DNA from: Chlorokybus atmophyticus
Taxonomy: Eukaryota > Plantae > Mesostigma and Chlorokybus algae
Assembly: GCA_009103225.1 (NCBI GenBank)
Contig: RHPI01002090.1
Location: 308,625 to 372,624, forward strand
Length of the DNA stretch: 64,000 nt
Direction of reading: 5' to 3'
Shown: one piece after another, positions 35,868 through 40,272 of the stretch
Layout: every line of letters starts with the position of its first letter
Numbering within the stretch: position 1 is the stretch's first letter
Position numbers and translations under genes: made by a program
Notes under the pieces: generated by a model
What the model saw: the letters and a program-made list of their open reading frames with translations, nothing else
Told to the model about the DNA's origin: nothing
Databases searched by the model: none

Positions 35868-36842
35868 GGCGGACTTTTCGTATTGCTGGTGTCGCAGTTG
35901 ACAGGGCACATTGCCCAAAGTCAGTTATTGTTGTTGTTGTTAATGTTTTGCAGGGTTATTGCGATCATACTGGTAGACACCTCAATTTGCACGCCATCAG
36001 TGACAACCTCTTAAATTTTGTGCCAATCGTGCACAGACATGCGCCGCAAACTCTGTCTCGATACAGTCAAGTCTGAATGTCATTTGCTTTTGTGCCCAAC
36101 AATACACGACAACCGCACAAACAGCCCCACAGTACACAATGCACCCACTACTGCACTACTCTCACACCATCCCCGCCAACCAAATTTTGCTCCGTCATCA
36201 GCCTTGACGCTGTGCGTGTGCTGATCGCGGCTGCCATAGAGTGCACACTTGCATGTCCATCGCAACAGATTAGTAATGAGAAACATATACAGATATAGTG
36301 TACAGGAAATTGTAGGCGCCATTGCGTGCATGCATTATTGCAACACACGCGTTTGAACATGATGCACAATGCACATTGACAGCGCATGTCAACATACTCA
36401 CCTACTTTACACATGTTCGACCACCGGGCTACCTACCCTACGCACTCTGCTCCTACCCCACCCTGTTAGTCATGCCAGCATGCATGTGCAGCCCTTGTTA
36501 CATCATCGCCACCACGCACTCTATCGTTCGTCCTGCCGAGAACTTCCTGTTGGCGTGCCGTCGCTGTCCTGCGGGGGGGCGGGCGGGGGGGGGGAGGACC
36601 CCAACAATTGTGTACAACAAGTTGTGGTTGGTCTGCCACACTGTAGCAAAAAGTATTGTCAAGTCCAAAACAGAAAAATAGCACACCTCGTGTACATTAT
36701 ATAAGCACAGAGTATGGATATTCGCCTAGCAACAATAACTGTTCAGTTCCCAGCCTCGCTGGTTAGTGCTGCTGGCTTCACGTCTGTACAAAACAATACC
36801 AAACAGTCATGTCCAGTTATTACCAGGTCGCATGCCAACAGC

Positions 36843-38436
36843 TCACAGTGCTTGCTCAACGTTGACAGGCAAAGTGTCCAGACCGAAAAACAAAACAGTA
36901 TCAGCGTCTACCACAGCACACATCAATGGTGCGTCCACTGCCTGCTCTGTAGCATGCAGAGCGGGCCATAGCGGTATGCAGTCATCAGCCCTGCAGCGAC
37001 ACCAAGTGAGTCAAACAACGGGGCTCCCCACAGCGGGATCAATGCGTAGTCACAGCATGCTAGCGTAAGGAAAACGGGGCGTCCCGCACAACAAGAGCCG
37101 CAATGCACCGCCGTTCTTGTGTTGCACACAGGCACACGCACTGCATACATACCTGCATATGCAGATCCAAAAGGCTGGTGGGCCAGGGTTCCGCTTGCTG
37201 AAATGCGCATCCGGTAACCAAACGCCATACGCCAGTTTCATGGCTTCCGCCTCCCTATTACGTACGGCGTTGGCCGCATGCTGGCGAGGATCACAGAAAG
37301 GATGCAGGATTTCTGCACATTGGCGTAAGTACGCCGCCCATACATCCTGACCCATGCAATGCTTGTTGTAGACTTCAACATGAATATTCGGCATCCATGA
37401 CAGCACATGACGCAACACCGTGTTGACTTCTGAGCAGCAGCACAATGCAAACAAACATAAGCAGTCTCCAAAACTTGTCTTTCTTACCCTTGCAAGCATG
37501 GCTTACCATCCAAACTGAGGACTGCTGCAGAGTCCGTGATGGCGTGCAGGTGCTGCTCCTGAAGACCACGATGAGATTGCCTTGAGTAACGCAGCAAATG
37601 CAACTGATAAGCCTGCTCTGTAGCAGTGAATGCTACTGCGTGACAAGCGCTTGTGGTTGGGCTTACCGTTGCACTAGTTTTTGCGACAACAAAATACTGA
37701 GCATTGCTGACTTCAGCCTCGGATTCAGCAGTGACATCTGGTGTTATCTGCTCCTTCTGTTGTGAAGTTACACCCTTTGGTACCCATTGCCCTCGCCGGC
37801 CCACGACATAACCAAGCTTCCTCAAATGGGAGTACACTTGATAGTGCTCAAGCGGAACACCTGGACACCCCAGGTGAGAATCCTACATGCATCTTCCCTT
37901 GCAACAAGTAATGCAATACAATCAGATTTGCTATAACACTCCACATCGAGAGCTCCTGCACAACAACACAAACCTGCACTCAGCATGAGCCCAAACGCTT
38001 TGTGCACGGACACTGTGATGGATTCCAGCAACAGTGTGAGGCTTCCCGTCTCCACCATGTGCCTGTGGAATTGTTGTGTCAGCCATGCTGGCTCGATGCA
38101 CACTGCACACTTGTTTGTATGCAGTCGAGCGCTTACACTGCTTCTTCAGGGTAGCAAAGAGAAACACCGTTGCGAGAGAAGCCGACGGCGTGCCACTGCG
38201 AGCCACATACGCTTGTCAACTCTACAAGCGCCAGATCGGAGCGCCACACGCCTATGGATGTTCGCTTCCTGTAATCAAACCAGTAATGTTTAACACCTTC
38301 CAAACAGCAAGTTCAAACGCTAGCATTGCAAGTATGCATGCTCTCACCGTGCGACTCTTGCGTCATTGCAACTGCTTGATGCAGACTCGCTGTCATCTAC
38401 AGCCTCAGCAGCCTCCTCTCCAGTACTCGACACCAT
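36843..38436 (-). CDS. TSEN54: tRNA-splicing endonuclease subunit Sen54; multi-exon
   Basis: SIGVWRSDLALVELTSVCGSQWHAVG...YPEEA; VYSHLRKLGYVVGR; AYGVWLPDAHFSKRNPGPPAFWIC; PLMCAVVDADTVLFF. Confidence 0.85.
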
Positions 38437-38540
38437 GCCTGCCAAGTGCTTATCATGAGCATTGACAAAACCGAAAGCAACTCTGTCATGTGCAAAGGAC
38501 AAGACCAAATAACTGGACCGAATGGGGATGTGTGCACATA

Positions 38541-39189
38541 CTATGGCTGGTTGGCTTTGGGTGCGATGTAGTAAGGAGGGGACGTGCGTTGCGCAAGGCT
38601 CAGCAGCTCCTGGCGATCCACAGCAGCGAGAGAAGTGTCCGACTGCTCCTCCTCCCGTCTCATGCGAAGCGTGTACTGCTCCTCCAGCGGACTCCACATA
38701 GGCTCTACGCCCGTCGTGTCCAACTCATCAATGCAACGCACTGCAACAACAATCAACTCAGAAACAGAGACCAGAATTCCTCAACGTCTTGCATGTCAAC
38801 ATATGCAACTCATCGGCACAATTGGTGCACAGCATGACGTGACATGACATGACACGACAGTGCGAGCAGCTTTGCGTTGCCCACGCCATGGACAACGTGT
38901 GAGTGAAGCAAGTCAATGCGCTGGCTTAAACAGCGCAACAATGCTCAACAATCGGCTGTGAACGTCTGCTTGTCATTGTAGTAAGACTTTCCCAGTGTCT
39001 CGCTCAAAACACAGGTTACTGCTTACCAAATTGCAGCAGGGACTCCAAGTCTGGGCGGAGCGCCTGTGTGTCTTGGACGGGCAGCGCGGCGAGCCTGGCT
39101 AGCTTGGTGAGGTCGGGCGTGTCCTTGACGGGGACGCTCTTGGACAGCAGTGAACGCACGGCCCAAGTGGCGCGGGGCGGGAAGGCCAT
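38541..39189 (-). CDS. gatC: Glu-tRNA(Gln) amidotransferase subunit C, organellar; 2 exons
   Basis: PDLTKLARLAAL...LESLLQF|VRCIDELDTTGVEPM...LRMRRE...RQELLSLAQRTSPPYYIAPK. The start codon is uncertain. Confidence 0.8.
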
Positions 39190-40272
39190 CAATCAGTCGC
39201 CTGAGCAGCATGCACACCCGCCCATCATGCACAGACGCACACATTCAACGCTGAGCGCAGCTAACAAGGAACAAGGGCAGGCACCATTACAGCCAACCAG
39301 GTGAAGCAGGCAAAGTAGGCATAGTAGAGAAGGCACAGAGCTGCTGTGAGACCGTACCGTGCCACCACCGCCGCCGCCGTTGTCCCAACTACACGTCGCC
39401 AAATGCGAAAACGCATAGCGTCAGGAGGGTTTGCAGCGCGTCATCGTCGGCGTTGTCGTTGTTTGCAAGCTTGCGGGCTGCTTGCGGGAGCTGATCGGGT
39501 TCATGGTGGGCTGGCCTGAGCTGAAAACGGGGTGTTGTGGAGCGCTAGGCCTACAAGCGTTGGCCAACACAAATCTCTGCACTGCTTCATAGGTGAGTCA
39601 CGCTGATCAGCAACATGCACGTGCGTGATGAATGCTGCTTCGATGAGGGGGGAACAAATGGCCGACGGTCAAGGCTGTGGCATTCTGTGCATGTCACGCA
39701 TGTGTTGAAGCCATCAGCATTTATTCGATTGACTTGCATGACGCTGGGTTTGTGGCTGTAGTATTGTGTGGTTATGACGCTGTCATTGAGCGTCATTGCG
39801 AGGCTGTGTCACGCAGCACTTGCCGATATATATGCTCGTCCCCTTCCCCTCCCCTTTGCCCCTCGCTTGCCTCCAATGTGCCCCCCCCCCCCTCCCCCAA
39901 ATAACCAGACCAATGCACATCCAGTTCAAGAAATTAGTTGCTGAGATGCACACAACTTCTTACTGGCAGTTGGACTGTGCTGTTGCCGGTCTGCAGTGGC
40001 TCAACATCAGTGTGTGATACACGCTATGGTCATTGTGTTCAGATTGACTGTGCAAGGGAGGGAACACAACAGCCAAGTAGTTGCGGCGGTTTGTCTGGTT
40101 GCACCAAACATGGCAGGCACACGCTAGGTACGGGCTGAAGGTCTGCAGCTCAACATACCGACAAGTGCGGGCTTGCAGACCATGGAGCAGATGAAACATA
40201 GCTTACGAGTACTATGGATTCCTGTCTAAGTAACTCGCGACAATGCATGCAGATCCAGCCTACGCAGTCAGC

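Follow-up and report, generated by a model that had tools for sequence, protein, structure and literature searches.

The streptophyte alga Chlorokybus atmophyticus carries the genes for two tRNA-related proteins, GatC and Sen54, on a single cis-spliced nuclear RNA. The locus lies on the minus strand of a 64,000-nucleotide (nt) stretch of contig RHPI01002090.1 (assembly GCA_009103225.1, positions 308,625 to 372,624), which we call the window and whose first letter is position 1. The GatC open reading frame (ORF1) extends from its ATG at 39189-39187 to a TAG stop codon at 38543-38541, and the Sen54 open reading frame (ORF2) extends from its ATG at 38436-38434 to a TGA stop codon at 36845-36843. 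Splicing places the GatC stop codon one nucleotide before the Sen54 start codon. We propose that the locus is a nuclear bicistronic gene of Chlorokybus and that both proteins are probably produced from one mRNA by scanning ribosomes, with leaky scanning as the foremost route.

Evidence for the joint RNA comes from four public Chlorokybus runs that were compared with positions 36400-39700. The data are assembled contigs whose run type was guessed by the index, and contigs that contain none of the introns are therefore taken to be of RNA origin. Run X1, from a 2021 study, provides a single 1627-nt contig that extends from ~39392 to 36491, crosses nine junctions and carries both GatC and Sen54. 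Run X2, from a different study in 2013, likewise provides a single contig with both genes (1400 nt, 39181 to 36663, eight junctions). All of the junctions in the two contigs are GT..AG on the minus strand, the joints that they have in common are identical, and both contigs show 100% identity to the window. The exons joined in silico give an RNA of 1626 nt, in which all nine introns are GT..AG, ORF1 occupies positions 47-409 and ORF2 occupies positions 411-1274. The mature RNA of ~1.63 kb thus consists of a 5' untranslated region (UTR) of at least 46 nt, 120 GatC codons, a single C, 287 Sen54 codons and a 352-nt 3' UTR. Because a GT-AG junction connects a GatC exon with a Sen54 exon, both exons reside in one pre-mRNA. 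GatC and Sen54 are co-transcribed as one cis-spliced nuclear RNA.

The junction between the two genes is created by an intron that begins inside the GatC stop codon. In the genome, the GatC stop codon and the Sen54 ATG are separated by 104 nt, and a GTATGT donor starts on the G of the stop codon. The first-pass annotation, which was made from the sequence alone, had placed both genes on the minus strand at this spacing and had proposed a donor at this G (TA/GTATGT, G at 38541); the spacing is verified from the sequence, and the donor is used in the contigs of both X1 and X2. The spacer intron is the third of nine and covers 103 nt (38439..38541, minus strand, GTATGT...TGGCAG), with its first G being the third base of the genomic TAG. 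Its joint is aligned as 38541>38437 in the X1 and X2 contigs, with GT..AG borders and an ambiguity of 1 nt. The acceptor is TTGGCAG, with the AG at 38440-38439, and the intron ends 2 nt before the Sen54 AUG. The spliced sequence reads CCA TAG C ATG GTG, in which the TA of the last GatC exon and the first G of the next exon rebuild TAG. The spacer is reduced to a single C, and Sen54 is located in the +1 frame relative to GatC. Upstream of its ATG, the Sen54 frame of the spliced RNA stays open for just 20 codons. The rebuilt TAG and the +1 frame exclude a simple readthrough fusion. GatC is unaffected by splicing, since TAG terminates its frame with or without removal of the intron. The spacer contains five AGs, and the intron holds four ATGs. 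The AUG at 38539 opens 17 codons, and those at 38489, 38462 and 38456 have a common frame that overruns the Sen54 AUG to 38397. Intron removal therefore deletes four AUGs, three of which overrun the Sen54 AUG, and clears the path to Sen54 for any scanning route.

ORF1 encodes 120 amino acids in two coding exons. The exon with the GatC start (39027..39200, minus strand) is present in the X1 and X2 contigs and contains the ATG in the context GATTG-ATG-G, with T at -3. It ends at 39027 (TTTG/GTAAGC) and is followed by a 286-nt phase 1 GT..AG intron (38741..39026), whose joint is found in both X1 and X2; the reading frame resumes at 38740 after TTGTTGCAG. The last GatC coding exon (38542..38740) ends in the TA of the stop codon and harbors three internal ATGs, all in a weak context. 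In a profile search, this exon alone matches the Pfam GatC family PF02686 with 25.2 bits (curated cutoff 23). The product of spliced ORF1 does not differ from the annotated Chlorokybus protein eukprot jgi/Chlat1 Chrsp26S08860, the sole close database protein. A HMMER library search with GatC yielded 74 matches at E<=0.001, and every match that has a named source or a Pfam family computed beforehand is GatC. In an alignment with nine eukaryotic GatC proteins, the N-terminal WSV motif, the GVEP core and the Y-x-x-A-P-K end all line up. Chlorokybus GatC ends five residues past the Y-x-x-A-P-K motif, as its relatives do, and thus has the usual C-terminus; the aligned homologues terminate within 0-20 residues of the same point and display no conserved C-terminal extension. 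On this sequence evidence, ORF1 is GatC, the small subunit of the organellar tRNA-amidotransferase. The other two runs contribute little to the locus. Nothing from run X6 was placed on positions 36400-39700, and run X3 exhibits nothing beyond short pieces at 95% likeness; at the junction of the GatC intron, a diverged tail finds no match. One short X3 contig (38712-38741) contains the start of the last GatC exon, followed by 29 letters similar to the end of GatC exon 1 (39027 onward) apart from several differing bases. The position of the GatC intron seems to be conserved in a diverged Chlorokybus lineage.

ORF2 encodes 287 amino acids in seven coding exons, all on the minus strand. The first exon (38348..38438) consists of the G that completes TAG, the C of the 1-nt spacer and then the ATG, with A at -3 and G at +4. 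The second exon (38137..38268) contains the conserved N-terminal domain and matches the Sen54 N-terminal domain profile PF12928 with 25.9 bits (cutoff 24). Similarity searches were run exon by exon, and the best Protein Data Bank (PDB) match of this exon is human TSEN54 residues 81-117 (E 0.001). The next exon (37974..38062, GT-AG flanks) is found as a piece in X2 and is implied in X1 by its two flanking joints and by a gap in contig position at 633-722. It is followed by an exon at 37667..37860 in the X1 and X2 contigs, whose best PDB match is human TSEN54 residues 154-194 (E 0.011), collinear with the match to residues 81-117. A micro-exon of 52 nt (37507..37558, GT-AG flanks; 51 nt between joints according to the aligner) is joined on both sides in X1 and X2. 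The exon at 37153..37312 is present in the X1 and X2 contigs, and a short X3 contig crosses the next junction. The last exon (36491..36990) comprises the Sen54 stop codon and the 3' UTR, and reaches the 3' end of the X1 contig; no relevant PDB match was found for the C-terminal exon. The family matches identify ORF2 as a homologue of Sen54, a tRNA-splicing endonuclease subunit. The first-pass annotation had named the two genes correctly, and its statement that both products act on tRNA holds at the family level; nothing here shows that a common tRNA role is the reason for the linkage of GatC and Sen54. In addition, Sen54 intron 7 (37559-37666, minus strand) is 108 nt long, a multiple of three, and lacks an in-frame stop codon, so its retention would add 36 residues with the frame intact.

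Is the joint RNA the principal product of the locus? The depth over the spacer region argues that it is. In X1, the depths of bins 38398-38508 and 38509-38619 are 97.0 and 191.6, respectively, and the corresponding values in X2 are 6.44 and 12.7. In both runs, the summed depth of each bin equals the depth of the spliced contig multiplied by the fraction of the bin that it covers. The spliced contig alone explains the bin depths, and thus no other assembled contig resides on the 103-nt spacer in X1 or X2. A separate Sen54 start or GatC end within the spacer would leave sequence there, which argues that the bicistronic form dominates. This argument falls short of proof, given that contigs drop rare forms and the filter may hide records.

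Three other accounts of the RNA have to be weighed at this point. The spanning RNA could be real, with Sen54 produced mainly from a separate monocistronic transcript or ORF2 left untranslated, in which case the locus would represent a read-through or conjoined transcript. Contigs lose rare variants and reveal no transcript ends, and the translation of Sen54 from the joint RNA is inferred, both of which leave room for this account. However, in both runs the GatC exon is the sole exon from which an assembled path leads to the first Sen54 exon, the 103 nt that precede the Sen54 AUG and that a separate 5' UTR would need to occupy bear no contig, and the ATG at 38436 is the sole in-frame ATG that retains the conserved Sen54 N-terminal domain. 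We therefore regard a conjoined transcript as improbable. The intron structure proposed in the first-pass annotation fares far worse. A 59-nt intron (38541-38483) was predicted to convert TAG into TAA and to leave 15 in-frame sense codons before the Sen54 ATG, generating an mRNA with two in-frame ORFs and the option of a readthrough GatC-Sen54 fusion. The GT donor and an AG at 38484-38483 are present, the arithmetic is right, and a minor isoform of this kind is conceivable. The predicted AG is nonetheless unused in the contigs: the joint to 38483 (38542>38482) is absent from the contigs of all four runs (0/4), and both studies use the acceptor at 38439. The 15-codon string exists in the DNA and is located inside the intron that is removed, TAG is rebuilt rather than converted, and GatC homologues have no conserved C-terminal extension. 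Both ORFs do reside on one spliced RNA, as predicted, but they are 1 nt apart and out of frame, which eliminates the fusion. We consider this alternative very improbable. Reinitiation and leaky scanning, which the same annotation had listed, remain live options after correction of the junction. Finally, a contig that spans two genes is not in itself proof of a single transcript and could represent an assembly chimera of adjacent transcripts. The link observed here is a canonical GT-AG junction from a GatC coding exon to the first Sen54 exon, with 1 nt of ambiguity, rather than an overlap of UTRs, and it is seen in two studies, which makes a chimera the least credible of the accounts.

How would ribosomes reach the Sen54 AUG? 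We propose the following scheme. A promoter region upstream of 39392 gives rise to a pre-mRNA with nine GT-AG introns, and scanning ribosomes would synthesize both proteins from the resulting single mRNA. The first AUG, in a weak context with U at -3, would serve to initiate GatC. Some of the 43S complexes would leak past the GatC AUG and the three internal weak AUGs to the strong Sen54 AUG, and post-termination reinitiation over the 1-nt gap would be a possible second route. The sequence contexts of the AUGs are consistent with this scheme. The four AUGs ahead of Sen54 (the GatC start and the three internal ones) have T, T, C and C at -3, respectively. None of the three internal GatC AUGs has a G at +4; one is the start of an out-of-frame ORF of 7 codons, and the other two are in-frame Met codons. 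The Sen54 AUG, by contrast with these weak contexts, contains A at -3 and G at +4. The locus thus displays the weak-ORF1/strong-ORF2 Kozak arrangement of green-algal bicistrons (Gallaher et al. 2021, PMC7896298; Duenas et al. 2025, PMC11892635) and fits the leaky-scanning model put forward for them. In vivo mutagenesis in two chlorophytes showed that the ORF2 output is inverse to the ORF1 Kozak strength, a result that points to leaky scanning. Leaky scanning is the route that we would rank first, with reinitiation as a real second.

In the reinitiation alternative, the mRNA is the same, and Sen54 is produced mainly by 40S subunits that are retained after the UAG and restart at the AUG 1 nt further on; the role of the intron would be the juxtaposition of stop and start. 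The spacer of just 1 nt after splicing favors this route, as does the ability of post-termination 40S subunits to restart at close-by AUGs, which is cited in the green-algal bicistron literature. ORF2 is well expressed from synthetic Chlamydomonas bicistrons whose junction is the 6-nt TAGCAT, and their authors credit reinitiation (PMC5144980). Moreover, the three internal AUGs of ORF1 would impede leaky scanning, and ribosomes that start at the two in-frame ones would still end at the same UAG. The efficiency of reinitiation, however, drops with ORF1 length, and ORF1 has 120 codons; the inverse relationship between ORF2 output and ORF1 Kozak strength in the two chlorophytes is also the opposite of what reinitiation predicts. 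Reinitiation as the main route is thus a possibility that we hold tentatively. A more elaborate version assigns a regulatory function to the spacer intron as a splicing-operated valve: GatC would be produced from every transcript and Sen54 from spliced molecules only, regulated intron retention would set the GatC:Sen54 ratio, and UAG-C-AUG would act by coupled termination-reinitiation. We consider this version rather unlikely; if coupled termination-reinitiation does operate here, it would be a mode not yet shown for natural algal bicistrons.

Several observations weigh against a bicistronic gene translated by leaky scanning. The basis is RNA contigs, from which the translation of either ORF is inferred. 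Assembled contigs are blind to transcript starts, ends, abundance and rare isoforms, and a monocistronic GatC or Sen54 RNA is possible. The adjacency of GatC and Sen54 is observed here in one genome, that of Chlorokybus. ORF1 holds three internal AUGs, and its out-of-frame AUGs (1 observed vs 0.91 in codon shuffles) are not depleted, so the AUG-depletion signature of leaky scanning is absent. Weak contexts at four of four AUGs would arise by chance with a probability of ~0.06 (about 1/16). A stop codon ahead of exon junctions marks an mRNA for nonsense-mediated decay under the usual rule. The GatC stop codon precedes six further exon junctions, and therefore nonsense-mediated decay would be expected, which this mRNA would have to escape.

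The outer boundaries of the unit are consistent with a single promoter. The furthest 5' sequence seen is a 5' UTR exon at 39358..39392 (minus strand), which corresponds to the first ~36 nt of the X1 contig, contains no ATG and is joined by GT-AG to 39200. The 157-nt 5' UTR intron between them (39201..39357, GT..AG, joint 39199>39357) is observed in X1 only. On the plus strand, a divergent neighbor is represented by a separate X1 contig (depth 63 vs 269), which ends at 39422 and leaves the stretch at 39592; its first seen exon (39422..39592) is followed by GTGAGT. This exon ends with ...TCATAG/GTGAGT, and an ORF that starts with an ATG inside it stops exactly at the exon end. The outermost assembled ends of the GatC-Sen54 unit and the plus-strand neighbor are ~30 nt apart. 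Such a short gap between divergent ends indicates a common head-to-head promoter region, the sole evident one for GatC-Sen54, and suggests a very compact bidirectional promoter. The poly(A)-like motifs AATAAA, ATTAAA and TGTAA do not occur in the GatC-Sen54 spacer. A TGTAA (36502-36498) precedes the 3' end of the X1 contig by 7 nt. TGTAA is the chlorophyte-type poly(A) signal, and a UGUAA-like signal may therefore operate in the streptophyte Chlorokybus as well, although this is a hint from a single case and the end of a contig does not mark a poly(A) site.

Conservation of the gene pair was addressed by looking up 30 of the 74 GatC matches. Seven relatives were placed on contigs, and none of them has Sen54 downstream of GatC, although several contigs are too short to tell and the seven include no known streptophyte algae. 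As the relatives placed are not close to Chlorokybus, the absence of Sen54 beside their GatC does not refute conservation. Other GatC neighbors were also observed. In a GC-rich eukaryote, three Logan RNA-type contigs from one study (ERR63496xx; L006:92-1661, L010:107-1676 and L011:103-1321) contain a 169-residue GatC ORF and then an overlapping frame on the same strand for an RNA methyltransferase of the SpoU/TrmH family. The methyltransferase frame is open from within GatC, and its first in-frame ATG is positioned ~190 nt before the GatC stop codon. A further bicistron with GatC in first place, a frameshift or a fusion could each account for this arrangement. In a clade with compact eukaryotic genomes from environmental assemblies (L003:5083-6570, L004, L005, L012:2592-5017 and L013), GatC is arranged head-to-head with a Tpt1-type tRNA 2'-phosphotransferase (PF01885). 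The two genes are ~80 nt apart in L003-L005, the called genes of L012-L013 are ~480 nt apart, and a sugar transporter resides on the other side; the arrangement is one conserved synteny block and is counted as a single observation. Tpt1 is a tRNA-splicing enzyme.

The locus matters for several reasons. Chlorokybus is an early-branching streptophyte at the base of the land-plant lineage, and such loci would push the bicistronic layout deeper into the green lineage. The anatomy of the junction is unusual in that the donor G doubles as the last base of a stop codon and the acceptor is located 2 nt before the next start codon, so that splicing trims a 104-nt, AUG-rich spacer to a single base and alters neither protein. 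The junction thereby offers a clean natural test of leaky scanning vs reinitiation, and the mRNA, with six exon junctions beyond its first stop codon, raises the question of how nonsense-mediated decay is avoided. In terms of annotation, the two gene models are parts of a single transcription unit.

Comparison with known systems places the locus near some types of multi-gene transcript and apart from others. The trans-spliced operons of nematodes and kinetoplastids do not match, since the assembled RNA keeps the two ORFs cis-spliced together; no search for spliced leaders was made. In caliciviruses and influenza B, termination-reinitiation occurs at stop-start sites with UAAUG or AUGA overlaps and relies on an upstream element complementary to 18S rRNA. 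The Chlorokybus junction resembles these sites in having a stop and a start within a few nucleotides and differs in that the two codons do not overlap. A closer likeness is found in the synthetic Chlamydomonas vectors with a stop-TAGCAT-ATG junction, in which a minimal, unstructured junction of a few bases suffices for ORF2 expression, as compared with TAG-C-ATG in Chlorokybus (Onishi and Pringle 2016, PMC5144980). Those vectors are engineered, have long ORF1s and no junction intron, and their mechanism is debated. Human MOCS1 (bioRxiv 10.1101/429183) is another case in which splicing at the end of ORF1 sets the relation of two ORFs. There, alternative splicing removes the stop codon and fuses the ORFs, whereas in Chlorokybus the stop codon is rebuilt and the ORFs remain separate and out of frame. 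A readthrough or splice-fusion bicistron of the MOCS1 type is ruled out by the rebuilt TAG and the +1 frame of ORF2. GatC is also one of two distinct proteins translated from a dicistronic transcript in Drosophila, DNApol-gamma35/GatC (FlyAtlas 2, PMC5753349), but the partner is the accessory subunit of the mitochondrial DNA polymerase and the host belongs to another kingdom.

The nearest counterparts are the polycistronic nuclear mRNAs of chlorophytes (PMC7896298; PMC11892635); the first-pass annotation had mentioned polycistronic mRNAs in green algae. Like them, the Chlorokybus RNA combines two unrelated conserved ORFs in a single mature mRNA that is cis-spliced and of the capped type. With 363 nt, ORF1 is short (published medians 291-600 nt), its Kozak context is weak and that of ORF2 is strong, and the ORFs are out of frame, each with its own stop and start. 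The definition used for green-lineage bicistrons, at least two independent conserved ORFs on the same strand of one mature transcript, describes the assembled contigs, and the Chlorokybus pair is known from such contigs rather than from single-molecule reads (Iso-Seq) or proteomics. The host is a streptophyte, the spacer is a splice-made 1 nt in contrast to published medians of 40-260 nt, and ORF1 is not AUG-poor. The GatC-Sen54 pair is absent from the readable entries of the supplementary lists of Duenas 2025, none of which contains 'amidotransferase', 'Sen54' or 'endonuclease'. No paper that deals with nuclear polycistronic mRNAs in Chlorokybus emerged from a full-text literature search, and a phrase search for intercistronic or inter-ORF introns returned nothing relevant. 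Thus, the Chlorokybus locus belongs to a known kind, the polycistronic nuclear mRNAs of green algae, and its new features are the lineage, the pairing of these two genes and a spacer of 1 nt that is made by splicing.

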